A stretch of 64,000 nucleotides of DNA from Ruditapes philippinarum (taxonomy: Eukaryota), in contig NW_026858706.1 in NCBI RefSeq assembly GCF_026571515.1, forward strand, positions 1 through 64,000, written 5' to 3'. The notes beneath the pieces are model-generated. The model searched no databases, was not told the DNA's origin, and saw only the letters and a list, made by a program, of their open reading frames with translations. Of this stretch, positions 7,290 to 56,745 are shown piece by piece. The first letter of the stretch is position 1; every line of letters starts with the position of its first letter. The translations under genes were made by a program, and so were the position numbers.

Positions 7290-10200
7290 TGGGAACGTGC
7301 TAAACTTAAGGTATGCACACTAAATATGAATATTAAGATATGCAAACTAAGCGTGCAATTTAAAGAAATATTTACTAAGCGTGCAATAACATGATATAGA
7401 TATTTAACGTCCAATGGTTAAACATACACACTAAGCGTGAATCGTTAAATAACTATGAAAAAACGTGTAGTGTTAAGGTATGCATACAAAGTGTGCACTG
7501 TTTAGATATACGTACTTACGTGCAGTGTTAAGGTATGTATACTTAGCGAGCAACGTTTAAGTATGCAAACTAAGCGTGTAATGATAAGGAATGCATACTA
7601 AGCGAGCAATGTGAAGGTATGCATGCTAGGCGGGTAATGATTAGTATACATTCTGAGCGTGCAACGTTAAGGTATAGTTACTAAGCGTGTAATGTAAAGG
7701 TAGGCATACTAAGAGTACAAAGTTAAGGCTTTCACACTAAATGAGCAATGTTAATTTTTGCATTCTAGGCGTGCAATGTTAAGGTATGCATGCTGAGCGT
7801 GTAATGTCAAAGTCAGCATGCTAATCAAGTAATGTTTAGGTTTGCGTACTAAGCATGTTATGCTTAGGTAAAACATACTAAGTTACAGTGTTAATGTATG
7901 CATTTTAAGCGTGCAATTTCATGGTATGTATTCTTAGCGAGCAATGTTAAAGTATTTACACAAAGCGAGCAGTGTAAATGTAGCATAGTTAACGAGCAAT
8001 GTTAAGGTAATAACACTTCGCTAGCAATGTTTATGTATGCATACTAAGCGGACATTGTTAAGGTATGAATACTAAGCGGACAATGCTAAGGTATGCATAC
8101 TAAGTGAGCAATGTGTAGGTAATCATACTTCGCCAGCAATGGTAAGTTATGCATACTTAGCGGGTAATGTTAAGGGATGCATACTGACTAACTAAGTGAG
8201 CAAAGTTCAGGTTTTCATAATAATTAAGCATCATTAGATGCATACAAGCGAGCAATGTTAAGGAATTCATACTCAGCGAGCAATGTTAAGGTATTCATAC
8301 TCAGCGAGCAATGTTAAGGTATTCATACTCAGCGAGCAATGTTAAGATATTCATACTAAGCGTGCAATGTTAAGGTATTCATACTACGCAAGCAATGTTA
8401 AGGTATTCATACTTCGCGAAAAAATGTTAAGGTATTCATACTCAGCGAGCAATGTTAAGGTATTCATACTCAGCGAGCAATGTTAAGGTATTCATACTCA
8501 GCGAGCAATGTTAAGATATTCATACTAAGCGTACAATGTTAAGGTATTCATACTCAGCGAGCAATGTTAAGATATTCATACTAAGCGTGCCAATGTTAAA
8601 GTATGCATTCTACGCGAGCAATGTTAAGGAATTCATACTAAGCGAGCAAATGTTAAGGTATTCATACTAAACGAGCAATGTTAAGGTATTCATACTATGC
8701 GAGCAATGTTAAGATATTCATACTCAGCGAGCAATGTTAAGGAATTCATACTAAGCGAGCAATGTTAAGGTATCCATAATACGCGAGCAATGTTAAGGTA
8801 TGCATACTCAGCGAGCAATGTTAAGGTATTCATACTCAGCGAGCAATGTTAAGGTATTCATACTCAGCGAGCAATGTTAAGATATTCATACTAAGCGTGC
8901 AATGTTAAGCTATTCATACTACGCGAGCAATGTTAAGGTATTCATACTACGCGAGCAATGTTAAGGTATTCATACTACGCGAGCAATGTTAAGGTATGCA
9001 TACTCAGCGAGCAATGTTAAGGTTCATACTACGCGAGCAATGTTAAAGTATTCATACTCAGCGAGCAATCTTAAGGAATTCATACTCAGCGAGCAATGTT
9101 AAGATATTCATACCACGCGAGCAATGTTAAGGTATTTATACTCAGCGAGCAATGTTAAGGAATTCATACTCAGCGAGCAATGTTAAGAATTCATACTCAG
9201 CGAGCAATGTTAAGCTATTCATACTAAGCGTGCAATGTTAAGGTATTCATACTACGCGAGCAATGTAAAGGTATTCATACTACGCGAGCAATGTTAAGGT
9301 ATTCATATTACGCGAGCAATGTTAAGGTATTCATACTATGCGAGCAATGTTATGTTATTAATACTACGCGAGCAATGTTAAGGTATTCATACTACGCGAG
9401 CAATAATAAGGTATTTAATACAACGCGAGCAATGTTAAGGTATTCATACTACGCGAGCAATGTTAAGGTATTCATACTACGCGAGCAATGTTAAGGTATG
9501 CATACTAGGCGAGCAATGTTAAGGAATTCATACAAGCGAGCAATGTTAAGGTATTCATACTAAGCGAGCAATGTTAAGGAATTCATACTAGGCGAGCAAT
9601 GTTAAGGAATTCATGCTAAGCGAGCAATGTTAAGGTATAAATACTTCACAAGCAATGATAATTTACGCATGCTAAGCGGACAATGCTCAAGGACGCATAC
9701 TTAGCGAGAAAAGTTAAGGTATGCATACTAATCGGGCAATTTTAAACAATGCATACGATACTACTAAGCAGGCACTGTCAAGGTATGCATACTAAGGACA
9801 CTATGTTAACTATGCATACTAAGCGAGCCATGATAAGGTATTCATACTAAGCGAGCAATGTAAGGGTATGCTTACCAAGCGGGCAGTGTTAAAGAATGCA
9901 ATCTAAGCGTACAATGTTAAGGTATGCAAATTAAGCGAGCAATGTTAAGGTTTTTATACTAAGTGAACAATGTTTAGGTTTTAATAATTCACAAGCAATG
10001 ATAAGGTACGTATACTAAGCAGGCAATGCTGAGGGATACATATTTAGCTAGCCCTGTTAAGGTATTCATACTAAGGGAGCAATGTTCATGTAATCATACT
10101 CAGCCACCATTGTTAAGGTCTGCATACGAGCCTATTAAGCAAGCACTGTCAAGGTATGCATATTAAGCGAGCAATATTAAGGTATGCATGATAACCAGAC

Positions 10201-10350
10201 AATGTAAAGATACACACACAAAGCGAGCAATGTTAAGGTATGCATACAAAGCGGGAAATGTTAAGGTCTGTATACTAAGCGGGAAATGATGAGGTGTGTA
10301 TACTAAGTGGGAAATGTAAAGGTATGTATACTAAACGGGAAATGGTAGTG
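7290..10350. repeat. 28-bp minisatellite (consensus CAGCGAGCAATGTTAAGGTATTCATACT), roughly 100-110 copies
   Basis: Period of 28 read directly (tcagcgag at 8273 and 8301). The core at about 8250-9640 is homogeneous and both flanks are progressively degenerate. Confidence 0.95.
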
Positions 10351-22754: not shown

Positions 22755-23265
22755 AATGACAAGGTGACAAGGAGGCGACACATCACTACCCTTTGACGAA
22801 ACAATGTCAACCGAGGCTTTAAATCACTACCGTTGTCAAGATAATGCCAACGTGACGCAACATTACTACCTTTGACAAGATAATATCAACCTAGGCGTTA
22901 CATCACTACCTATGGACAAGAAAATGTCAACCAATGCGTAACATCACTACCCTTGGAGAAGACAATGTCAAGCTAGGGGTTATATCACTAAACTTGACAA
23001 GATAAAGTTGACCGAGGAGTTACATCACTACCCTTGGAGAAGACAATGTCACGCGAGGCGTTATATCACTAACCGTGACAAGATAATGGCAAGAGAGGCG
23101 TGTCATCACCACCCTTGAACGAGCCAATGTCAACTGAGACGTAACAACTCTTCCCTGGACAATATAAGGTCAACCGAGGCCTTATATTACTTCCCTTGAC
23201 AAGACAATGCCCACCGAGGCGTTATATGACTTGTCTTGGGTGAACATTACCTATTCCCTCAATGG
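22755..23265 (+). repeat. 40-bp minisatellite array (CACTACCCTTGACAAGACAATGTCAACCGAGGCGTTACAT), ~12 copies plus tail
   Basis: Direct periodicity of 40-41 nt. Confidence 0.9.
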
Positions 23266-26424: not shown

Positions 26425-26940
26425 CATTGAGGGTGAAAGAACAAAATGTTTACCCGAGACAAGTGATATAACGCCTCAGTTGACATAGAGATCTTGTCAG
26501 GGTAGTGATGTTACGTCTCTGTTGACATTGTTCTTTGTCAAGGATAATGATGTTTCACCTCGGTTTACATTGTTCTTGGCAAGGGTAGTGATGTTACGCC
26601 TAGGTTAACATTGTCTTGTCAATGGAAGTGATGTAACGCCTCGGTTGACATTATCTTGTCAAGGGAAGTGATGTCACGCCTCGGTTAACATTGTCTTGTC
26701 AAGGATAGTGATGTAACGCCTTGATTGACATTATCTTGTCAAGGGTAGTAATGTTACGCTTCGATTGACATTGTCTTGTCAAGGATAGTGATGTAACGCC
26801 TTGGTTAACATATTATCTTGTCAAGGGTAGTAATGTTACGCTTCGATTGACATTGTCATGACAAGGGTAGTGATGTAACGCCTCGGTTGTCATTATCTTG
26901 TCAAGAGTAGTAATGTAACGTCTCGGTTGACATTTTCTTG
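26425..26940 (-). repeat. Same 40-bp minisatellite in inverted orientation, ~12 copies plus tail
   Basis: Unit TCGGTTGACATTATCTTGTCAAGGGTAGTGATGTAACGCC (period 40, e.g. 26641 and 26681) is the reverse complement of the 22755-23265 unit. The non-repeated tail (ccctcaatg) is also shared. Confidence 0.9.
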
Positions 26941-28243
26941 TTCCAACACTTCCAGTGTGATGCGATGTTTATTATACTGTACCGAGTAACAAATCAATGT
27001 TTAAGATAGTATCTCCGACATAATGCGCGTGAGGACCTATGAGTAAAAGTTAAATCTGTTTAGGTACTCGAAATATATCAAAGACAATTCCTGTCTATTA
27101 CAATGCTTAAATGATATGTTAAGTACAATTTACATACAAATGTCCTGAAACATATCTTAGGAGTTCACATAAAAGCATATAATGGTGCTGTTTTAGCTGA
27201 ATTGATATATTAAATGCATTATTAAACATATCTCTAGGTAGTGAACTTTTTTTAAAATGCTTATGCTGAATATGAAAGGTTGCACAATTGTAAAAAAGTG
27301 ACTTTCTTTGTGTATTCTTTATACTGAAAAATCATTGAAGTCAATATCGGATATAGTGATAGAATATGATTCTATTTTACAAAAGCAACTATTTAGTATT
27401 TTCAAAATTCATTTTATGAATAAATTAAAAAGTGCTGTGAAAAATAATGGCAACTACGTGCTTATGTACTGTTTAAAACAAAGTTCTTTTGAGAACATTT
27501 TTTATCATTCATCAAGGATAAAGATATTAGAACTTGTTGATATTTCTCACAAAAGTGAAGTGTATAACTCAAATAAAGGTGAAAACAAATGATCGAACTT
27601 CTTCATTTTGTAACTGCTGGTTTGCTTTTACTATTCAACGCAAGATTTTATATTATATAACTTATGAACTTTGCAAAACTGTCTGAGATAATCAAATTTA
27701 GTTCATGAGCAATTTATAAAATCAGAATAATAGAGAGAAAATGTACATAAATGTGACTCAAAGAATTCAGTATTCCTATTTTTGAGAGACATTAGTATTG
27801 TACGGTGAAGTCATTAATTTAAATTATTACCACCTGATGTATAGGTTGGTTATTTTTCTCTACAGTAGAATAAGCTACACTACAGATATAATCTTGTCTT
27901 TTTGTAAAGACATTTAAAGAGTGTTATTAAAAATATAATAAGATACAACAATACAATTATTGTGTATTCAAGTACCATTAAATGTTATGATGTTTAAAAG
28001 TTAAGCATGGGTAGCAAAATTTTGTTAATCTGTTATCTTGATATTTTCCAGTTCTTTTTGTTATTGCCTATAGGAATGAAGAATTCAATAGCTTATCTTA
28101 TTATTATCATGATTTATATGTCATTTAACATGACCTTTGATCGAAAATACAAGTTATTCTATTCTATTTTATCATCGAACCGAAATGTGATGTTGCCATG
28201 AGACATTACGAATTGTTACCCTCTGACGTACACCTGTGCTATA

Positions 28244-40835: not shown

Positions 40836-43800
40836 ATGCGTTGGCTTCTTAAACCTCTGTTTTCACTTTTTGTGATATTGCACGTGGTATTTGCTTACAA
40901 ACCGATTATTTTTATGCACGGGATATTGAGCGAACCCCAGGAAGCAAACACTTTATTCCAATGGATAAAAATGGTATGATTATGTATTATTTTGTTCACT
41001 AATTTATTCTTATTTCACGTTCCGAAAAAATGTTTTATCGCGATCTTATTACTAAAGATACGTTGACAAGTCGTATGCAATTATATTTAAAACAAAAACA
41101 AATATATATGTTACATTTTTGATATGTTGAGTACATTGAAAAAACACAGGACTTTATTATACATATATATTTTTGTTACGGGGTAGGGTGTCCTCTTTGT
41201 TAGTTTGACAGGAAGGTTTTTGCCGCCCTGTCATTTTCACCGGGGGAGGGCTTTTGTCCGTTATTAATATTGATGTCTACAATTTAAAACATTTTTTTAT
41301 ATNNNNNNNNNNNNNNNNNNNNNNNNNNNNNNNNNNNNNNNNNNNNNNNNNNNNNNNNNNNNNNNNNNNNNNNNNNNNNNNNNNNNNNNNNNNNNNNNNN
41401 NNNNNNNNNNNNNNNNNNNNNNNNNNNNNNNNNNNNNNNNNNNNNNNNNNNNNNNNNNNACTCACTCACTCACTAAATAAATCACAGACGACCATATTTC
41501 TATGAACACTGCTTATTGAATTGAATATAAACTGAACTCATTTAAGATAAATTGTAATTTGATCACTTTTATAAAAGGACAGTTCATGTATATGTTACAA
41601 CAATTCTTTGTTTATCCCTTGAAAATGACCAGTCCAAAATTTAATTATACCGCCCATGCGACTATCATAGACTAGTATCTGACATAGTGTCGTATGTGAC
41701 CACTCAATTTCATTTATTTTAATAAATGTTTGCTTATCAAAGGACCATCCAGGAACGGAGACGTTTGCTATAGATATGTACAACAAACTGGACAGTCTTG
41801 TCAATATGATGGAGCAAGTTGACCAGGTCGGGAAAGTTATGATGAAATTCATGCAACAACATCCCGAAGGCGTAAATATTATCTGTTTCTCACAAGGTAA
41901 TAAAATTAGAATGTATATGTCTGAATCGATCAATCATGGTATATCTCTTTGCAATATTTGTCTTTTGTTTGTTTGCCTATCATAGCAAGTCTACCGTTTT
42001 TCAAGTCTACCTTCCTTAAGACTATCTCTTACAAGTCTATTGTTTGCAAGTCTAATTTCTGCAAGTGTATTTCCTGCAAGTCTATCGTCTGCAATTCAAT
42101 CGTCTGCTAGTATATCGTCTGCTAGTATATCGTCTTAAAGTATATCGTCTTAAAGTCTATCGTCTTCAAGTATATCGTCTTAAAGTATATCGCCTTAAAG
42201 CCTATCGTCTTAAAGTATATCGTCTTCAAGTCTATCGTCTTAAAGTATATCGTCTTGAAGTATATCGTCTTAAAGTATATCGTCTTCAAGTATATCGTCT
42301 TCAAGTATATCGTCTTAAAGTATATCGTCTTCAAGTCTATCGTCTTCAAGTATATCGTCTTCAAGACTATCGTCTTCAAGTCTACCGTCTTCAAGTATAT
42401 CGTCTTCAAGGTTATCGTCTGCTAGTATATCGTCTTCAAGTATATCGTCTTCAAGTATATCGTCTTCAAGTCTATCGTCTTCAAGTATATCGTTTTCAAG
42501 TCTATCGTCTGCTAGTATATCGTCTTCAAGTATATCGTCTTCAAGTATATCGTCTTCAAGTCTATCGTCTTCAAGTATATCGTCTTCAAGAATATTGTCT
42601 TCAAGTATATCTCTTCAAGTATATCGTCTTCAAGTCTATCTCTTCAAGTATATCGTCTTCAAGTATATCGTCTTCAAGTATATCGTCTTCAAGTATATCG
42701 TCTTCAAGTCTATCGTCTTCAAGTATATCGTCTTCAAGAATATTGTCTTCAAGTATATCTCTTCAAGTATATCGTCTTCAAGTCTATCTCTTCAAGTATA
42801 TTGTCTTCAAGTATATCGTCTTCAAGTATAACGTCTTCAAGTATATCGTCTTCAATGTTATCGTCTGCTAGTATATCGTCTTCAAGTCTATCGTCTTCAA
42901 GTATATCGTCTTTAAAACTATCGTCTTCAAGTATATCGTCTTCAAGTATATCGTCTTCAAGTCTATCGTTTTCAAGTATATCGTCTTCAAGCATAACGTC
43001 TTCAAGTATATCGTCTTCAAGGCTATCGTCTGCTAGTATATCGTCTTCAAGTCTATCGTCTTCAAGTATATCGTCTTCAAGTCTATCTCTTCAAGTATAT
43101 CGTCTTCAAGTATATCGTTTTCAAGTCTATCGTATTCAAGTATATCGTTTTCAAGTATATCGTTTTCAAGTCTATCGTCTTCAAGTCTATCGTTTTCAAG
43201 TATATCGTCTTCAAGTCTATCGTCTTCAAGTATATCGTCTTCAAGTCTATCGTATTCAAGTATATCGTCTTCAAGTATATCAACTTCAAGTCTATCGTCT
43301 TCAAGTATATCGACTTCAAGTCTATCGTCCGCAAGTCTATCGTTTGACTGTGCAAAATTTTAATTTTGACTTTCTCAAGTTAATCTTTCATACAAGGGCA
43401 CAATTCATAAACTTCATCTTGAGTTATCGAAATATGAAATTGATCTTTAATGTTCAATTTTCGAATTAAGGAATTTTTTACCTTTACTCTTTAAAAAATA
43501 TTTTCCTTACTTTATTCAAACTTTTAAAATAACCTGCTTTGGTACTGCACCATGTGACGTTATAATCATACTTATTTCATTGCAAACGTTAAAGGAATTA
43601 TCAGGGAAGTATAACTAGCTTTATATCCTGCTCCTTCATTTAAAGTGGTATCTGGTAGATCTAAATAGATATATCTGTCTTTTATTGACAGGTGGTCTTG
43701 TTTGTCGAGGCGTGTTAGAGCAAAATCAACATAATGTGGACACATTTATTTCATTAAGCTCTCCGCAAGCCGGACAATTTGGAGGTAATTGTACGCGTAT

Positions 43801-46800
43801 TTGAGTGCACTTTATCAATCAACTTTAAATCACTTGTCACTTTAGTAGTTTTCACACAATGGTAGATAATATTTGTAATATTTTGAAATATACGATGTAG
43901 GAATGACCTGGTCGTTTGTCACGTGATTTGATATCCTTGGTTCTAAATCCTTATATCCAGAAATATCATTAACGTGTCAGCACTTTACATGTCGCACCTT
44001 GATAAGCCCAAAGGGGGACCATTTTCGATTCCAATATCTCAATAAACCTGTACAATCTTAAAGTGTTGCTCAAGTGTGGTGGCCTGTTGCGGCCATTTCA
44101 AACCCGCGAGAAATTTTAACATTTCATCATAAAATGTTGTAGGCAAGTCAAAAATCCAGAGATTTTCTGCTGAAATCGTACAAAATGTTGAGGTGAACGT
44201 ATAAACCTCGAAATTTTATAACAGATGATGGAAACTGCAAGGAACATTTTGACTTCAGCGGCCCGTAGCGTCCACGGTTTGACTGTACACTTTATCCCTA
44301 GTATGTCTATATAAAAAAGTCGAGGAACAGAAAGAAATCCGCGACATATTTTCAAGTGTTGTAAAAACTCTACTAAGAGTCGAGTGGGAAAATTTAAGGC
44401 CGCGGATTTTGTTCTTAAACAACGAATTTCCATAAAAGGTCGCGGGGAAAAATCCACGACTTTTTAGCCGCGACTTTTGTGTAAATGCATTTCCACGCAT
44501 AAAAAGTCGAGGCATAATGCTCAAACTCGACTTTTTACAAGGTAAGCATCAAAACAAAATATACCGGATTATAATGGCTGCAATCGGCTTCCTAAACCAA
44601 AGTAGGCATATGTTTGCGTAGCTTAGTCTACTATATAGACAAAAACAAAAAATGGGTTTCTAAAATCCGCGACATTTTATAAATTTCGACATAAAATATC
44701 GCGGATTTAAAAGTTGCCCGCAACATTTTATAAACCGATGGTAAAATTTCTAGCAGCATTAGAATGGACGCTTTCGGCCACCATACTCAAGGTATATCAT
44801 ACACAAAATAAAATGTATTAACATTACTTTTTTTACATTAATAATAATATAAACTTTAAAACCGTTAATTATATGGTTGGATTATAAAAAACGCTTTCCT
44901 ACATTGCCAGTTAAAGTTTTGATTTCTATTTTCAGATACCGATTACATAAAATATATTTTCCCGCACGTTCTTCGCGACAATGTGTACAAGTAAGTATGG
45001 ATAAAAAACAAACAATTTTATAATTTCTGAAACAGCAGATAAAAAATTCATGCTTTCTAAACATGTTTGTTGGAATAAACAACATAAACAAAATTTAATG
45101 ATTCTCTTTTAATGTCTAAGAAATGTATGCAAGCATCAAATTAATCATTTCATGCGTCTACAAGATTTGACTGTACAGAGTTTCAGGATTTATTTTCATA
45201 AGTTCTATTTGATCAATCAAGTCAGAAATATATTTGCATGTACATAGTCATGTGTTTGAACCACATGCTGTGTTTTGTTTAATGTGGATAAAATTCGAAA
45301 AGACAAAAAGATGACAATGTCGTATTTTGTCGACGTATTTCGTGTGTTGTTCTACGCCTTTCCGCCTTGTTGCAGGGCTTTGCATATAGTAGTAATGAAA
45401 TGACCGTTTCTTACAGGATAGCGTACTCTAAAGACGGTCAAAATATATCAGTGGGAAATTATTGGAATGGTATTATACTCGTTTACACATCATATAGATT
45501 TGTAAATACAAGATGTTTATATAATTAGTAAATGTATATCTAAATGGTAGCCATTACAAAGTTAAATAAAGATGTAAAATATTAGGTAATTTAGATACCG
45601 GAAATGATAATATATGAAAAGGTAAAAAGGAAATCTTAAACCTTCATTTACAATACCAATTATTACTCTCACTTATCAACAGCTTGCGGTAGTTGTTTTG
45701 TATCGTACAAGTAACTTACAATTTAATTACGTCTCAAGGTGCTTGGCGACATTGTTCGCCAGCAATACATTTTCAAAATGTTAAATTAGAATTAATATTT
45801 AGAGAAAAAATAAAACATTTCTTTAAGGATTTAACGTCAATGCGTGTTGCTATGGTTTCAGATCCACATCACCAGGACTTATATAAGGAAAATTCCGAAT
45901 TTCTGGCAGTGTTAAACAACGACACTTTTAACATAAACAGCAAAGGTCGGTTCAAATAAATATACTGATTATTCATAATATTCATCATAGTTTGCATAGT
46001 TTTCAAAACAGAATGTCTTTGGCCATTTAAGTAACCGAGATCTAATATACATTGTTAACGAACTTATAGTTATTCTTTGTGCATAAGTATAAGACATTTA
46101 TAAGAACTGTGGCCATCCAAATAATTTCAATGCTTTGATTGCAATTAAAGCCGAATTCAAAGAAACTGTATTAATCATATTGTGAGAAATTCTTCAGCGC
46201 TCATGAGCTCTAAACATGAACGTAGAAATATTATATTTTATATATTATATATGATCTATGTATATCTTTCAAATTAACCAATATCTTCCAAATTACTTTA
46301 CCAATTGTGAACAATGACCATATGGTGTCCGCCTACTCTAATTTTGCTCCGTATACTTTATAGTAAATCATTCTCACCTGAATACTGCATACATGAAACA
46401 AAATACCGGTTTGCAATAACTTAAAACGTGAACGTTATCCGATTCATTTGAGCACAAATTTATAAATATTAACCCTTGATCTTTTCTTATAACTTTTAAT
46501 TTGTATAATCACTATAAAGTTATTTAGCAATAATTCATTGTCTACCTTCTGGTACGTAATGTCTATCGAGACATTCCTCCCAGAAATAAAGACCTGCAAA
46601 ATGCACATTAAAAACTTTAAAAGTCACTAGAAATGACACCACATGTACTGATTTACAAACATTTAACCCGAGAAATTGGGCAATTCCAAAGAACAACTTC
46701 TTAGACCACGACCACTCGCGACTCGATACATAACGGGACGACACCATATATAATATAAACAACAAAAATATGAAAGTATAATATATTATTGGTAAATAAT

Positions 46801-46903
46801 TATTTATTGACAATTCAGAGTACAAAGAAAACTTTCTGCGCCTGAAGAGATTGGTAATGATTGGTGGTAAGGATGATGGTGTTATTACACCGTGGCAATC
46901 AAG
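40836..46903 (+). CDS. PPT2: Lysosomal thioesterase PPT2-like, 3'-incomplete. Exons 40836-40973, 41743-41896, 43692-43784, 44936-44990, 45417-45469, 45862-45945, 46819-46903
   Basis: All introns are GT-AG and phases are consistent (0,1,1,2,1,1). The protein has a signal peptide, [24 protein letters not shown] (nucleophile Ser), [28 protein letters not shown], and [24 protein letters not shown] (catalytic Asp). The exon(s) with the catalytic His were not found. Confidence 0.93.
41303..41459. other. Assembly gap (N run)
   Basis: Seen directly. Confidence 1.
41985..43345. repeat. 15-bp minisatellite (TCAAGTATATCGTCT) in PPT2 intron 2, ~90 copies
   Basis: Direct periodicity with occasional 13-bp variants; explains the VYRLQ and SSSSI pseudo-ORFs. 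Confidence 0.95.
44075..44785. mobile_element. 711-bp non-autonomous DNA transposon with T(A/G)TGGTGGCC TIR and exact 6-bp TSD, in PPT2 intron 3
   Basis: CTCAAG|TGTGGTGGCC ... GGCCACCATA|CTCAAG (TSD at 44069-44074 and 44786-44791). Confidence 0.85.
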
Positions 46904-49087
46904 GTAAGGATGATGGTGTTATTATACCGTGGCAATCAAGGTAAAGATGATGGTGTAATAACACCGTGGCAATCAAGGTAAGGGTGATGGTATTATAACA
47001 TCGTGGCAATCAAGGTAAGGATGATGGTGTTATTACACCGTGGCAATCAAGGTAAGGATGATGATGGTATTATTACACCGTGGCAATCAAGGTAAGGGTG
47101 ATGGTGTTATTTACACCGTGGCAATCAAGGTAAGGGTGATGGTGTTATAACATCGTGGCAATCAAGGTAAGGGTGATGGTGTTATTACACCGTGGCAATC
47201 AAGGTAAAGATGATAGTGTAATTACACCGTGGCAATCAAGGTAAGGATGATGATATTATTACATCGAGGCAATCAAGGTAAGGATGATGGTGTTATTACA
47301 CCGTGGCAATCAAGGTAAGGATGATGGTGATATTACATCGTGGCAATCAAGGTAAGGGTGATGGTGTTATTACACCGTGGCAATCAAGGTAAGGGCGATG
47401 GTGTTATAACACCGTTTCAATCAAGGTAAGGATGATGGTGTTATTAACCGTGGCAATCAAGGTAAGAGTGATGGTGTTATTACACCTTGGCAATCAAGGT
47501 AAGGGTGATGGTGTTATAACACCGTGGCAATCAAAGTAAGGGTGATGGTGTTATTACACCGTGGCAATCAAGGTAAGAGTTATGGTGTTAATACACCGTG
47601 GCAATCAAGGTAAGGATGATGGTGTTATTACACCTTGGCAATCAAGGTTAGGATGATGGTGTTATTACACCTTGGCAATCAAGGTAAGGATGATGGTGTT
47701 ATTACACCGTGGCAATCAAGGTTAAGATGATGGTGTTATTACACCGTGGCAATCAAGGTAAGGATGATGGTGTTATTACACCGTGGCAATCAAGGTAAGG
47801 ATGATGGTGTTATTACACCGTGGCAATCAAGGTAAGAATGATGGTGTTATAACACCGTGGCAATCAAGGTAAGGATGATGGTGTTATTACACCGTGGCAA
47901 TCAAGGTAAATCTAGAATGATGGTGTTATTACACCGTGGCAATCAAGGTAAATCTAGGATGATGGTGTTATTACATCGTGGAAATCAAGGTAAATCTAGG
48001 ATTATGGTGTTATTGCACCGTGGCAATCAAGGTAAATCTAGGATGATGGTGTTATTACACCGTGGCAATCAAGGTTAATCTAGGATGATTGTGTTATTAC
48101 ACCGTGGCAATCAAGGTAAATCTAAGATGGTGGTGTTATTACACCGTGGCAATCAAGGTAAATCTAGGATGGTGGTGTTATTACATCGTGGCAATCAAGG
48201 TAAGGATGATGGTGTTATTACACCGTGGTAATCAAGGTAAGGATGATGGTGTTATGACACCGTGGTAATCAATGTAAATCTAGGATGATGGTGTTATTAA
48301 ATCGTGGTAATCAAGGTAAGGATGATGGTGTTATTACACCGTGGCAATCAAGGTTAAGATGATGGTGTTATTACACCGTGGCAATCAAGGTAAGGATGAT
48401 GGTGTTATTACACCGTGGCAATCAAGGTAAGGATGATGGTGTTATTACACCGTGGCAATCAAGGTAAGGATGATGGTGTTTTTACACCGTGGCAATCAAG
48501 GTAAGAATGATGGTGTTATAACACCGTGGCAATCAAGGTAAGGAACATGTTGTAATTACACCGTGGCAATCAAGGTAAAGATGATGGTGTTATTACACCG
48601 TGGCAATCAAGGTAAATCTAGGATGATGGTGTTATTACATCGTGGCAATCAAGGTAAATCTAGGATTAATGGTGTTATTGCACCGTGGCAATCAAGGTAA
48701 ATCTAGGATGATGTTGTTATTACACCGTGGCAATCAAAAGGTTAATCTAGGATGATTGTGTTATTACACCGTGGCAATCAAGGTAAATCTAAGATGGTGG
48801 TGTTATTACACCGTGGCAATCAAGTAAATCTAGGATGGTGGTGTAATTACATCGTGGCAATCAAGGTAAGGATGATGGTGTTATTACACCGTGGTAATCA
48901 AGGTAAGGGTGATGGTGTTATGACACCGTGGTAATCAATGTAAATCTAGGATGATGGTGTTATTAAATCGTGGTAATCAAGGTAAGGATGATGGTGTTAT
49001 TATTACACCGTGGCAATCAAGGTTAAGATGATGGTGTTATTACACCGGGGTTGGCAATTCAAGGGGTAAGGATGATGGTGTTATTAC
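46867..49087 (+). repeat. 37/42-bp minisatellite copied from the PPT2 exon 7 end and splice donor, ~55-60 copies
   Basis: Unit GTAAG GATGATGGTGTTATTACACCGTGGCAATCAAG. The first copy is the coding sequence for [11 protein letters not shown]. The 42-bp variant starts GTAAATCTAG. Confidence 0.95.
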
Positions 49088-52000
49088 GACGAGAAAACTA
49101 AACATTGTAAAAAAAAAAAGCCCAACAGGTATAGTTTAACACCCGTTCCAAAAATTCACACATCCTTAAGAAAAAAAATGCACATTTTTGAAAAAAAAAA
49201 TATAATATACTTGCATTTTTTAAATTGGAATTTTTAAACACATATTTATAATGTGAATATTTTATGATTTATGCAAAACCTTTTACACAATTTTTACAAG
49301 TTTATCGTCGGGAATTTTCTTAAAAATTAAAAAAAAAGGGGTTTTAAAAACTCCCTTTTCAACCCCAGTTAGTTATATTTTAAGACTTTTTATTTTCTTT
49401 TGAGTTTTGCTTTATTTGTACCCCTGGCAATATTTATCAATGATTTTTATATCTTTAAATTTAAAAAAATCTTTTTTGGGCTTTAAATATAACATTTTTG
49501 GGGAAAGAAAAAGAAAAAAACATCCCCCGAAAAATTTTATTATATTTTTTTTTCTTTTTTTTTTGTATAAAATGTTTTCCAAATATTTTACGGGGAGTTT
49601 ATTTTAACTAAAATTTTCCCTTAAAAATTTTTAAAATTTATTCATTTTCATTAATTAAAAAATGAGTTCGGCCCCCTTTGGGGTGTCTACTGAAAAATCA
49701 TGAAATAAAATTTATAATTTTTAGTCTATAAAGGGAAAAAAGTTTGGGCTAAAAATCTGGTTTAAAAAGGTGGACTGTTTATAAAGGGGAATCGCCGGTT
49801 TTTCAGGGGCCCTACCCACTTTGGGAATTTTTACATAAAAAGTGTTTTTAAAAATCAAAAATTTTTTCCCTTCCTCCATAATTTTAAAAACGGACCTCTG
49901 ATTCCTGGTGATAAATTTAACAGAACAGAAGATGGGGATTTATTAAAATCACAAAAAAAATTTTATCATAAAAATTAAAATGTATATTATTGTCATATAA
50001 TTTAAAAAAATTTTAAATATATTGTTAATAAAACAAGTAAAAAAAAAAACCCCCTTTCAATTAAAAAGGGTGAAACAAGATTATTTTTTTAAATTTTGGT
50101 TTTTCACATTCCCCTGCCGTTTTTGCACTCCTTTAAAAATGAGATTGCAAAGGAAACCGTGTATATATTTTGAAGTGAGGGCATTAGCGTTTTTCAAAAA
50201 TAGCGTTAAGACGTAAAAAAAGTTTGCTTACTTTTTATAGGCGCATCAAAAAAAAATTTTTCTTTTTCCCCTTCAAACGCCTTTATTTTTGTATAAGATA
50301 AATTGAATTTGGTGTAAACTTCATAAAATGAATTAAATTAATCTTTTCCCCTTTTTACGCTCCCAAAAAGGGGTCGGGATAAAAAAATCATAATGGGTTT
50401 AACTCGTTTCCCAAAAAATGGGGGGAAAAAATTTAAAACCCACCCCATTTAAAAATTCCTCTAAAGAGATATGATTAAATTTTTTTAAAAACTTATTTAG
50501 GAATCGTGTCTAGTTTTCAGTTACTTAATGGTTTTTTTTTAATGGCAAAAAAAAATGGAAAAAATTTAAAAAATGTATTAAAATACTTTTTAGACTTAAA
50601 CGTTTAGTGTAGTACTGAAAAATTTTCAAAAACATTTTTTTTTAATTGCAAAGTTTCAATTCTGATTCCGGGGTGGATTGTAAGGAAAAATGTGCGCGTT
50701 TAAAGGGACCAAAGCCAAATTTAAAGTTACGGGAAAGTAGAGGATATTAAATAAGCGTTTTTTTAATATTGATTTTTTGGGCGTTTATGATATTTTTTAT
50801 TAAAATTTTAAAACAAAAAAGTTTTTAATGATTAAGTAAAAAATTTTACTATATAATATTCTTTTTTCAAACCAAAAATAAAGAGCATTTTAAGTAAAAA
50901 AACCATTTTCATTAAAAAAATTTTTCGCATACAGTGCCGGTTTTGCTCTTTTTAAAAGGCCCTGAAAATATTTTTACGTTTTTACGTTTATTTTGGGAAA
51001 GCAAACCCCTACGTTCATTTTTTACTTTAAAAACAATTTTTATTTTGGGGGTTTTTGTGATTAAAATAAATTGTGGGTATTAAATTTTTTTAATTTCAGG
51101 ATTTATTTTTTATTTAGTGTTATTAAAAAAAAAATAAAAAAAAATCTGGGGGTTTTTTTTAAACCCTTTGGGGGTTTTTCTTCAAAATAGGGGCAGGCCC
51201 ATAAATTTACAAAAATCCTGGTCCCGATCTTTAAAAAGGCCCCAGACTCTTTTTTAAAATTATAACATTTTTCCCCTTCAAAGTAAAAAAGAAAATCTTA
51301 GAAGTTTTAATAACCCCTTAAAAAACAATTGTTTAAATTTCAATTCCGATTTCTTCTCAAAAAAAAATATCGTACAAGGAAAACTTAAAATTTTGGGTTA
51401 AATTTCCCCGTCACAGAAACAGGGGGTTAACAGCCCCCTAAAAGAAACCAACCCCACTCTTTTGAAATTTTTTTTATCCATTTAAAAGGGCAGAGTTTCT
51501 GAAACCCATTTTGGGGGCATTTTTTTGTATACGTTTTAAAAAAGGGATTCCCGCCGTAAGAAGACAAGAAACTCGAAATTAGTGGGAAATTTAATTTATT
51601 TGGATAGAGTTAAAAGATTCATCATTTTAAAATTTTCTTTTTGGGGGCCCTTTTTTCGCCCCCCAAAATTTTTCCCCGCATATGTTTTCTCCAAAATTGA
51701 AAAAATCAATTGGGCCTTGCCCTTTTAACTAGCATTTAAAAATATAAAATTTACCTATCCAACTTTGATATCTTTTAAAAACAGCTCATTTAAAAAACTA
51801 CTTGAATTAAAAAAAAAAATTTCAACATGGGCACAAATAAAAAAACCAAAGCATTTCACAAAATCTTTCCCCCTTCCCCCTCTTTCCCTTTTTTTCCCTT
51901 TTCTTCCCCTTATTTCCCTTTTTTTTTCTTTTTTTCCCCTTTCCCCCCCCCTTCCCTTTTCTCCCTCCCTCCCTTTTTCCCCTCCTTTTTTTGTTTGCCC

Positions 52001-52403
52001 TTTAAATAATCTCCTTGGCCGACTAGCCAAAATTTTAAATTCCCCCTCTTCCCTTCAAAACTTTCTTCCCTTTTTCTTAAAACCCCCAATTTCAAATTCT
52101 TTTTCCCTTTTTGCCTTTTTCTTTACCTCCCCCTTTCCCCTCATTTATTTTTCCCCACTCGGACCTTTTTTTCCTAAAAATTAAAAACCCCTTTATTCCT
52201 TCCCTTTTTCTTTCCTTTTTTACCTTTTAAAAATTTCACAAACCCTTGCCCCTCCCCCCTCCCCTTTTTTTTGGGGGGCCCTTTTTTTCGGTGTTTTCGG
52301 GGGGGGGCCCTTTTTTTGGGCCCCTTTGGGTCTTCTTTAATAAAACCCTTTTCTCCTTTACCGGTTCTTCCCCCTTCCTTTCCTTCTTTTCCCCCTTCCC
52401 CCC

Positions 52404-52447
<44 letters not shown>

Positions 52448-54830
52448 CGCCCGGTGGTTTTTTGTGGGTGGGTTTTTTCTCTTTTCCGGTTTTTGTTTTT
52501 TTTTTCCTTTGGGGGGGGCCGGGGTTCCCTTCCTAATTTGGGGCTTTCCCAAAATTTTTCTTCTACCTTCCCTTCCCCTTGGTACCTCTTTTTCCCTTTT
52601 TTCACATCTCCTTTTTAAACCCCTTCACAAAAAACTTCCCTATTTTCCGGGGCTTTTAACCGCCCCCTTTGGCTTTTTTTTCCTTTTCCCCCCTCTTTTC
52701 CCTTTTTCCCTTTAGTTCTTTTCCCCTTTTTTTTCATTCCCTTTCTCCTTTTGTCCAAAAAAACCCGTAAAAAAACTCTTTTTGGGGGTTTTTCCCAAAA
52801 TTTCCCCTCACCTTTTGGGGTTTTTCTTTCTTTTTCCCCCGGGTTTTTAACCCTTTTCAACCCCCCAAATTTTCCCCAAAAAAACCTTTGTTTCCTTTTT
52901 CTTTTGGGCCCCCCCGGGCGGGGGGAAGGTTTTTGGGAGTGGGTCCCCTTTTTCCTCTTTTCTTCTCCTTAAAAAAAATCTTTCCCGTTCTCTCCTTTTC
53001 ACAAAACCCTTTTTTTCTCCCGCCACTCCTCTTTTTCCGTTCCCCCTTTCCCTCCCTTTTTAAACCCCCCCCTTTTATTCATTGTTTCCGGAAAAAATTT
53101 TTCCCAACCCTTTTCCCTAAATTTTTTTTCCCCCCGTTATTCCCCCCTTTCCTTCCTTTTCTTTTCCCCAAAAAAAAATTTCAATTTGGGGCCCTGGGGC
53201 CCGGGGTTTTTTTTCCCAACCCCTTCGGAAAATTTCCTTTTCCTTGTTCCCTTCTTCCCCCTTTTGTGCCCCCTGTTTGGGGTGGTAAAAAAACCCCAAA
53301 AATTTTTGAAAAACAACTAAGATTAAATTGGGCCCGTATTTTCTTAACCAAAAAATGGCAAAAGTTTTTTAAAATTTTTCTTTTAAAATTTATTTTTTAA
53401 ACCCAATCCCGGGAAAATTTTGATTTTTTAATTGCCCCTTTAAAAAATATCCGGGGGGGGGCCAAAAATTAAAAAAGGGAATTTCCCCCAAAAAAAACAA
53501 TGATACCTTAAGCAGGTTTAAAAAATTTTCTTGGAAAAAAATTATTAAAAATTTTATTTTAAAAAAAACCCCCAAATTTCCCAAAACCCAAAAAAATTTT
53601 CTATAAAGCAAAACCCCCAAACCCTCCTTGGATTCCCCTAATGGGAATTTTGAAAATTTAAAATACGGGAAAAAGAAAAAGGGCAAACAACCCCAAAAAA
53701 TCAAATTAAAGGGGAAAAACCCCGGAAAACAAAATTACCCCCAAAATTTTTAAAAAAAACAAAAAACCCAATTCCCTAATTAAAATGGAAAAAAACCCGA
53801 TTATACAAAACAATTTAGAAAAATAAAAAGGGAAAAAATAAAAAAACCCCCCGGGGGGTTAATGCAAGGGAAAAATTTTTCAAACCCTTTTTTTGAAAAA
53901 CCCAAGGTTTAAAATAAAAATTTTTTAAAATTTTGAAAAGATAAAAAGGCAACCCCTATAAAATTTTACCAATGGGGAAAAGGGAAATTTTTAATTAACA
54001 AATTTTCCAATTCCAATTTTCCCAAAATTGAAAAGTAAAAAAATAATTTTTTACCAAAATTTAAAAAGGAAATAAAATATTAATTTAAAACTTTTAAAGC
54101 CCCAATAAAATTTAAATTTTATTTTTGGGTTTTCTTTTCTTTTTTCAAAACCCCTTTCCCAAATTAAACATTTTAAAAAAACCCGATTTTTTTTTTAAAA
54201 TTTTTTTTAAAAAATACTTAAAAAAATTTTTTAGAAAAAATTTTTTAAAATCTCTTTTTATTTTTCAGTTTAACAAATTTTAAATCCCCCCCCAAATTAA
54301 AGGCTTTAATTTGTGAGTTTTACAAAAAGTGCCCTAATTGTTTTTTAATTGGGAAAAACCTTTTATTAACTTCTTTTGCACGAAAAGCAATTTTAGGGAA
54401 AAAATTATCCCCTAAAAAACCCTATATTCAATTTCTTTGTTGTAATAAAAACAAAAAATTTTATTTTAAAATCCTGGGTTTTTTTTTCCCCCAAAAGAAA
54501 AAACAACAATAAAAATTTTTTCTTATATAAAAAACATTTTTGGCAAAGCCCTTAAAATGGAAAAAATTAATTTTTCCCAAAATTTTTAAAACCTTGCGTG
54601 CTGGCAAAAAAAGGGTATTTCCCGGCTTTAGGCCGGAATAAATGGGGGCCCCCTTTTAAAATTTTTAGGTGAAAATTAAAGTTTATAGGAAAACAAAAAG
54701 GTGTTTTTTTTCCCAAAAAGGTTCCTCTTTTTTTAACCCGGGGTTTTTATTTCAAAAAAAAAAGGGAAAATTCCCCAAAGGGGGCCCCCTTTAGGGCCCC
54801 CTTTTTTTTAATCCTATTTAAAAAGGAGCA
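49050..54830. other. Low-quality, homopolymer-inflated sequence (probable unpolished single-read segment)
   Basis: Abrupt switch to runs of all four bases. The last minisatellite unit already shows inflated runs (ccggggttggcaattcaaggggtaag). The F/P/K/G-rich ORFs here reflect homopolymer codons. Confidence 0.85.
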
Positions 54831-56601: not shown

Positions 56602-56745
56602 NNNNNNNNNNNNNNNNNNNNNNNNNNNNNNNNNNNNNNNNNNNNNNNNNNNNNNNNNNNNNNNNNNNNNNNNNNNNNNNNNNNNNNNNNNNNNNNNNNN
56701 NNNNNNNNNNNNNNNNNNNNNNNNNNNNNNNNNNNNNNNNNNNNN
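56602..56745. other. Assembly gap (N run)
   Basis: Seen directly. Confidence 1.

Follow-up and report, generated by a model that had tools for sequence, protein, structure and literature searches.

The window analysed here comprises 64,000 nucleotides of Ruditapes philippinarum DNA (NCBI RefSeq assembly GCF_026571515.1, contig NW_026858706.1, positions 1 to 64,000 of the forward strand). In the assembly searched, which has 15,874 contigs and 1.41 Gb, it is contig C7193. On its plus strand lies a gene that homology identifies as PPT2, encoding the lysosomal palmitoyl-protein thioesterase 2. At the boundary between exon 7 and intron 7 of this gene stands a long tandem array of a 37-nt unit. The first unit is the end of the exon itself, the exon that encodes the catalytic-Asp motif, so the unit is at once coding sequence and the start of the repeat. 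A second contig, C15854 (locus L026), carries the same gene and a shorter version of the same array. It is most likely the other haplotype and is called the allele below.

Searches for the gene were run exon by exon and not on a joined exon model. The Pfam family PF02089 (Palm_thioest) scored above its cut-off for three exons of the window. Against solved structures, exon 7 matched human PPT2 (1pja, E 4.8e-8, residues 211-236) in preference to PPT1 (3gro, E 1.5), and exon 2 gave no match. With the amphioxus protein P0037, which NCBI names PPT2, as guide, nine coding exons were mapped by tblastn at 41-86% identity. We take the catalytic triad, following the PPT2 structure paper, to be the Ser of GxSxG, the Asp of GG(P)DDG and a His near the C-terminus. 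The corresponding motifs aligned to P0037 are CFSQG/G, divided between exons 2 and 3, GGKDDG in exon 7 and GVQHTHWH in exon 9 of the allele. The Asp motif reads GGPDDG in human PPT2 and GGKDDG in R. philippinarum exon 7. An earlier sequence-only reading of this DNA had named the gene PPT2, and the structure match, the Pfam family and the amphioxus alignment bear the name out. By Pfam the assembly holds two PPT2 loci and one PPT1-like locus, and no more. The PPT1-like paralogue (..KNLVLVKFLQDTMVEPRESE.., C2538:125232-130328, minus strand, loci L001, L004, L005 and L009) is without the 37-nt array. The exons of the window copy and the features of its array are as follows, a slash marking a splice boundary and the basis of each assignment being given in brackets.

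40836-40928, plus strand: exon 1, with start codon, signal peptide and YKPIIFMHG, its 3' end approximate (open reading frame list; tblastn with P0037)
41692-41878, plus strand: exon 2, ending in the nucleophile motif ICFSQG, limits approximate (PF02089 positions 22-87; tblastn)
43691-43783, plus strand: exon 3 (Pfam; tblastn, 75% identity to P0037)
44929-44991, plus strand: exon 4 (tblastn)
45412-45468, plus strand: exon 5 (tblastn)
45858-45926, plus strand: exon 6 (tblastn; an RNA contig from run X15 has the exon 6-7 splice on the allele)
46819-46903, plus strand: exon 7, 85 nt, with the catalytic-Asp motif GGKDDG (sequence and human PPT2 match; its start fits the RNA joint on the allele)
46864-46872, plus strand: exonic cryptic donor GTG/GTAAGG in the Gly-Lys codons, containing the left GGTAA microhomology (sequence)
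46866-49087, plus strand: 37-nt minisatellite, 57.6 units as assembled, unit 1 exonic (Tandem Repeats Finder; unit table)
46901-46909, plus strand: first, authentic donor AAG/GTAAGG, with an in-frame TAA at 46905-46907 on read-through (sequence; frame check)
47905-48198, plus strand: seven consecutive 42-nt variant units (GGTAAATCTAGG...) with the GTAAAT donor form (unit table)
49088-49128, plus strand: 3' part of exon 8 (GACGAG...CAACAG/gt), fused to the last array unit (comparison with L026 on the allele)
49725-49881, plus strand: exon 9, the catalytic-His exon, garbled (alignment to the allele; tblastn of the allele)

Tandem Repeats Finder (TRF) reports 46866-49087 as a single tandem array of period 37, with 57.6 copies, 88% matches and a score of 2946; the consensus unit is GGTAAGGATGATGGTGTTATTACACCGTGGCAATCAA. 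Unit 1 (46866-46902) lies entirely inside PPT2 exon 7 and, when the sequence is read directly, shows 0 differences from the consensus. The exon is bounded by an acceptor AG at 46817-18, extends over the 85 nt from 46819 to 46903 and is followed by the donor GT at 46904-05. The sequence-only reading had recognised the last 37 nt of exon 7 as the first unit, which is confirmed, and had put the repeats at about 55-60 over 46819-49087. The array is real and TRF counts 57.6 copies, but a figure near 57 is insecure, and that the sequence downstream of it is an assembly artefact had been overlooked. In the whole assembly, the 37-nt unit occurs in the window contig and in one collinear contig and nowhere else. 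Being confined to the two PPT2 loci, the array is neither a dispersed satellite nor a product of chance.

Units of 37 nt predominate in the unit table. Variants of 42 nt occur in two runs and bear the GTAAAT form of the donor, GTAAATCT, as does the end of the array on the allele. The core of the unit is a small palindrome, GGTGT..ACACC. The predicted RNA fold has a z of -2.95, its pairing being that of the 5-bp coding palindrome GGUGU/ACACC, within units and between them, and the donors lie open. Masking of the donors by RNA structure was considered as a candidate mechanism and rejected because the predicted fold leaves the donors unpaired.

At a threshold of at least seven of nine consensus matches, the array of the window contains 53 donor-like sites and that of the allele 17. 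Of the window sites, 29 are exactly AAGGTAAGG, identical to the first donor, AAG/GTAAGG. Past that donor, the frame of exon 7 reads TCA AGG TAA (46899-46907), an Arg and then a stop. By frame check, splicing from any later donor meets a stop at codon 28 of exon 7, before the His exon is reached, and splicing from the first donor to the exons of the allele keeps the frame open to the natural stop. The dozens of near-identical donors, the stop on read-through and the exonic cryptic donor at 46864-46872 had each been claimed from the letters of the sequence, and all are present.

The allele contig is collinear with the window for more than 20 kb, flanking genes included, at 80-96% identity, and it is because of this collinearity that we regard C15854 as most likely the other haplotype. 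Its sequence is clean. Behind exon 7 stand 17.6 units, 97-98% identical (TRF), the last of which continues into AAG/GTAAATCTTTTAAGG..., so that the terminal donor is AAG/GTAAAT. About 215 nt of unique intron 7 and a good acceptor come next. Exons 8 and 9 are both intact, the former reading S-HFGFYDEKLNIVEIKNQQ and the latter ...GVQHTHWHS...stop. Exons 1-7 of the window are intact as well, with differences from C15854 that are synonymous or conservative only. Exon divergence is about 3%, intron identity 80-90%, and a single amino-acid difference falls in exon 6. Homogenisation of the exonic unit 1 with the rest of the array was tried as an explanation of its sequence and rejected: 0 of 38 nt differ there and 9 of 269 differ elsewhere in the exons, which is not significant (about 1.3 expected, P ~0.28; exon 5 of this comparison was disregarded).

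Some further features of the PPT2 locus and its relatives were recorded. Intron 2 contains a second minisatellite of 15 nt x 85 copies at 42077-43343, represented on the allele by 5.9 copies (L026 8804-8891). Runs of N occupy 41303-41459 (157 bases, PPT2 intron 1) and 56602-56745 (144 bases). In the 3' flank of PPT2 on C15854, L026 3108-3419 has an RNA depth far above that of the gene, and 94% of its reads continue into unlike sequence; many joints of the 'opposite strands' kind fall at L026 3131-3136. This segment is a dispersed, transcribed inverted-repeat element. Among related proteins, P0001, a fish PPT2-A-like model of 377 aa, opens with an additional copy of the stretch from exon 7 to exon 9 and is probably a gene-model artefact. 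P0002, of 663 aa, has two PPT2-like domains in tandem, probably by tandem duplication.

The length of the array in the window cannot be taken at face value. Three features bear on it.

47720-48351, plus strand: higher-order block A, units 24-39 (pairwise alignment)
48352-49020, plus strand: higher-order block B, units 40-56 (pairwise alignment)
49040-54825, no strand assigned: homopolymer-inflated corrupted stretch, a degraded copy of real sequence, adjoining the array (base-repeat rate; alignment to the allele)

In the last of these a base repeats its predecessor with a probability of 0.49-0.64, whereas elsewhere the figure is about 0.30. Its alignment to the allele shows 67% identity, and of 257 extra bases 220 lengthen a homopolymer. 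These roughly 5.8 kb are an assembly or read artefact, and they inflate the distance from the array to the next clean sequence. The last array unit runs straight into the middle of exon 8 (..GTTATTAC/GACGAG..). Compared with the allele, the window lacks the remainder of intron 7 together with its acceptor, exon 8 is short of its first 16 nt, and exon 9 is unreadable. Since the sequence is corrupted from about 49040 onward, there is probably nothing biological in the lost start of exon 8 or in the His exon being unreadable. Block B is a 98% copy of block A, with one extra unit and five indels of 1-3 nt. Either it arose very recently by higher-order duplication, or it represents an overlap entered twice in the assembly. 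Because block B repeats block A noisily, a count of about 57 is insecure; about 40 units of the window are credible, and 57 is an uncertain upper figure. The array is unstable in length all the same, with about 18 units on one assembled haplotype and about 40 to 57 on the other.

Taken together, the units stand head to tail, their size falls in the 10-100 bp range of minisatellites, and the first unit includes the exon-intron boundary. Length differs between the two alleles (17.6 versus about 40-57 units), the allelism being an inferred one and the larger figure uncertain. We read the array, with a probability of about 80%, as a junction-spanning intronic minisatellite in the PPT2 of a marine mollusc, a 'mirage' or a variable number of tandem repeats (VNTR) of the type found in intron 7 (IVS7) of human F7. 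The F7 IVS7 VNTR has a unit of 37 bp, and its first monomer spans the exon 7/intron 7 junction (Borensztajn et al. 2006, PMC1557585). In F7 the most upstream donor alone is used, though the pseudo-sites are functional (PMC1557585). The same paper names further junction minisatellites in IFI6/6-16, CBS, LMNB2 and PDGF (PMC1557585). The mirages of amphioxus are tandemly duplicated exon-intron boundaries that vary between haplotypes and leave splicing undisturbed (PMC3087553); Adh3 and the globins BflGb6 and BflGb9 are the mirage genes of that source and the work it cites.

The birth of the array can be proposed in some detail. A 37-nt segment would have been tandemly duplicated by slippage or unequal exchange and then expanded. 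The bounds of that segment would be two GGTAA motifs 37 nt apart, one in the exonic Gly-Lys GGTAAG and the other in the GGTAAA of the original donor. A slip or exchange from GGTAA to GGTAA would yield exactly the 37-nt unit observed, and duplication with expansion would leave intron 7 opening with copies of the last 37 nt of the exon, each with a good donor. The AAG/GTAAAT at the end of the array on the allele is the likely original donor of intron 7. That a GGTAA microhomology seeded the repeat had been suggested before, and the ending of the allele's array in this donor fits the suggestion. The palindromic core GGTGT..ACACC may help slippage.

The Lys codon that completes the exonic GGTAAG is itself unusual. 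Among representative proteins, Pro occupies this position in 118 of 127 motif hits, and among the full-length PPT2s listed in 111 of 113, in agreement with the form GGPDDG that the sequence-only reading had given as usual. By this comparison the Lys of GGKDDG is derived and Pro is the rule. In fragments from four Lys-bearing relatives (P0004, P0007, P0017 and P0018), unique sequence (Y...) without any repeat follows QS-R, and one Lys-bearing fragment reaches the exon-8-like HFSFFGED after 19 codons. Because these four fragments read on without the repeat, the Lys codon is probably older than the array and created the microhomology. Whether Lys had triggered the repeat or resulted from it had been left as alternatives; trigger is probably the right one. 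Among 28 metagenome loci related to P0004, all Pro-bearing and not including the contig of P0004 itself, none has a repeat at this intron position. Many metazoan contigs have an intron at this very place, in phase 2 as well; several of these introns start with GTAAAT and none has a repeat there. Because of this shared position we consider intron 7 to be old and only its length to have grown. Of the earlier idea that an intron grew out of exon sequence, the growth in length survives, but the intron itself was already there. The converse, an exon born from the repeat, was rejected, the exon sequence being conserved across metazoa.

The runs that contain the locus come from one organism, from a 'mollusc metagenome' and from a 'marine sediment metagenome', and reads were mapped to the allele. 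Raw RNA depth on the gene was 1-5 in two runs and zero in a third. RNA contigs of X15, which comes from an independent study, show exon 6 spliced to exon 7 and exon 8 to exon 9, with GT..AG ends, and one of them joins exon 8 to ...TGATGGTGTTATTACACCGTGGCAATCAAG. These contigs indicate that the gene is transcribed and that its splicing uses a CAATCAAG/GT donor, the copy used not being distinguishable. Also in X15, a 61-nt unitig of the array without mismatch has a summed depth of 160, compared with 23-50 for the exon contigs and none for the unique intron. By the precedent of the known cases, the most upstream donor would make normal mRNA and the later copies would be silent pseudo-donors; rare use of a later copy would give a transcript with a premature stop.

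Several points weigh against this account and should be set beside it. The joint of exons 7 and 8 was below the reporting threshold in the raw RNA reads at depth 1-5. The X15 contig for exon 8 has just 28 nt upstream of the joint, and these are identical in every unit. Pre-mRNA at about 5%, in which tens of identical units add up, can account for the excess of array sequence in X15, but use of downstream donors is also compatible with it. The order with Lys first, a probable one, is argued from parsimony. An open reading frame in the 42-nt units has no relatives among 5.8 billion proteins, a blank that weighs little. Finally, we infer the allelic, not paralogous, status of C15854 from collinearity alone. 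Were C7193 and C15854 instead paralogues, separated by a segmental duplication of recent date, it would be loci and not alleles that differ in copy number. An intron identity of only 80-90%, an exon divergence of about 3% and the amino-acid difference in exon 6 would suit such paralogues. Marine molluscs, however, are highly heterozygous. The two contigs are collinear for more than 20 kb with their flanking genes, C15854 (61 kb) ends inside the gene as haplotigs often do, and Pfam gives just two PPT2 loci beside the PPT1-like one, all of which makes paralogy doubtful.

The assembly itself invites other explanations. The junction between array and exon 8 in the window is quite probably an artefact. 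If it were real, the long-array copy would be a PPT2 null allele, created when the sequence separating the array from a similar stretch in exon 8 (TGG..ATT.TAC) was deleted. Unit and exon 8 do share a short imperfect homology at the junction, the roughly 230 nt lost (unique intron and the start of exon 8) are too many for a typical small read error, and minisatellites promote such rearrangements. Yet the junction lies about 45 nt inside the homopolymer-inflated zone (49040 onward), the next 5.7 kb are plainly corrupted, exon 9 included, and exons 1-7 of the long-array haplotype are intact, with synonymous or conservative differences. We consider a genuine deletion unlikely. That errors of assembly or reads produced the entire array, and that the animal has none, is scarcely credible. 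The array does adjoin the corrupted stretch, and its last third resembles a duplicated overlap, but C15854 was assembled separately and has the array at the same exon, clean and with 98% unit identity, and the mismatch-free 61-nt unitig comes from a run of a different study. A functional role was weighed too, in the form of a rheostat acting through nonsense-mediated decay (NMD): use of downstream donors would rise with copy number, and long alleles would divert pre-mRNA to NMD and so set PPT2 dosage. Each downstream donor does lead to the stop at codon 28 of exon 7, 16 to 29 donors have the same sequence as the first, and the two alleles differ several-fold in copy number. Array k-mers are found in the X15 RNA with the unique intron uncovered, and human IFI6 and CBS use their first two pseudo-sites (PMC1557585). 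Against this, exon 8 was not seen joined to any downstream donor, at depth 1-5. F7, LMNB2 and PDGF use the first donor only, identical pseudo-sites offering no competition (PMC1557585), and in amphioxus the mirages leave splicing undisturbed (PMC3087553). The pre-mRNA just described accounts for the X15 signal, there is no sign of selection for the array, and relatives do without it. Such a rheostat is very unlikely, and it is just as improbable that long alleles leak to downstream donors or suffer array-mediated deletions, with copy number setting PPT2 dosage via premature-stop transcripts. We keep to the junction minisatellite. Rather than a regulatory device, the array is most likely a by-product, neutral or slightly costly, of a genome rich in minisatellites.

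Outside the gene, the window contains other arrays. At 7464-10334 there is a 28-nt x 102 array whose unit includes a donor-like AAG/GTATGC; its edges decay gradually, with no exon at either edge. Two 40-nt tandem arrays, at 22772-23231 and 26462-26941, are mutual reverse complements about 3.2 kb apart; they may mark the ends of a mobile element, as its inverted terminal arrays.

The PPT2 array offers a clean and large invertebrate splice-junction minisatellite whose proposed birth by GGTAA microhomology is readable in its letters. The 'scanning' rule of upstream-donor choice, established on human F7, could be tested on it outside mammals, and unequal exchange between the exon and the intronic copies could feed variant codons into the active site. 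For users of the assembly we rank a practical point higher. Because about 5.8 kb after the array are corrupted, gene models of the window copy of PPT2 will be wrong, and C15854 is the preferable contig for this gene.

Splice-junction minisatellites are already known, and the PPT2 array is a further case. Human F7 IVS7 is a close parallel, being polymorphic and having an authentic donor followed by identical pseudo-donors; that its unit is also 37 bp is a coincidence. It is a natural model of upstream-donor selection, and the sequence-only reading's suggestion that PPT2 provides a new natural test of proximal donor choice has to be withdrawn as a novelty, the test having been done on F7 IVS7 (PMC1557585). 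The two differ in that only 4 bp of the F7 unit are exonic and 5-9 repeats are present, whereas in PPT2 all 37 nt of unit 1 are coding and the repeats number about 18 to 57. The hosts differ as well, human for F7, where splicing behaviour has been measured, and a mollusc for PPT2. Amphioxus mirages share with PPT2 a marine invertebrate host, haplotype variation in length and repeated AG/GT signals. Their splicing is normal, and they have been proposed as a model for intron evolution (PMC3087553). The mirages reported in that paper have few units (3-6 in BflGb6), some of 150-160 bp, and PPT2 has a short unit in far more copies. In human IFI6 (6-16) intron 2 and CBS IVS13, by the account in PMC1557585, the donor is reiterated as in PPT2, with 25 pseudo-sites in 6-16 and 15-20 repeats in CBS. 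There the first two pseudo-sites are constitutively used, whereas in PPT2 any downstream use would mean a premature stop. What is particular to PPT2 is that the first unit is coding throughout and contains the catalytic-Asp codons, that the copy number is high and differs several-fold from one haplotype to the other, and that a probable ancestral donor is still visible at the far end.

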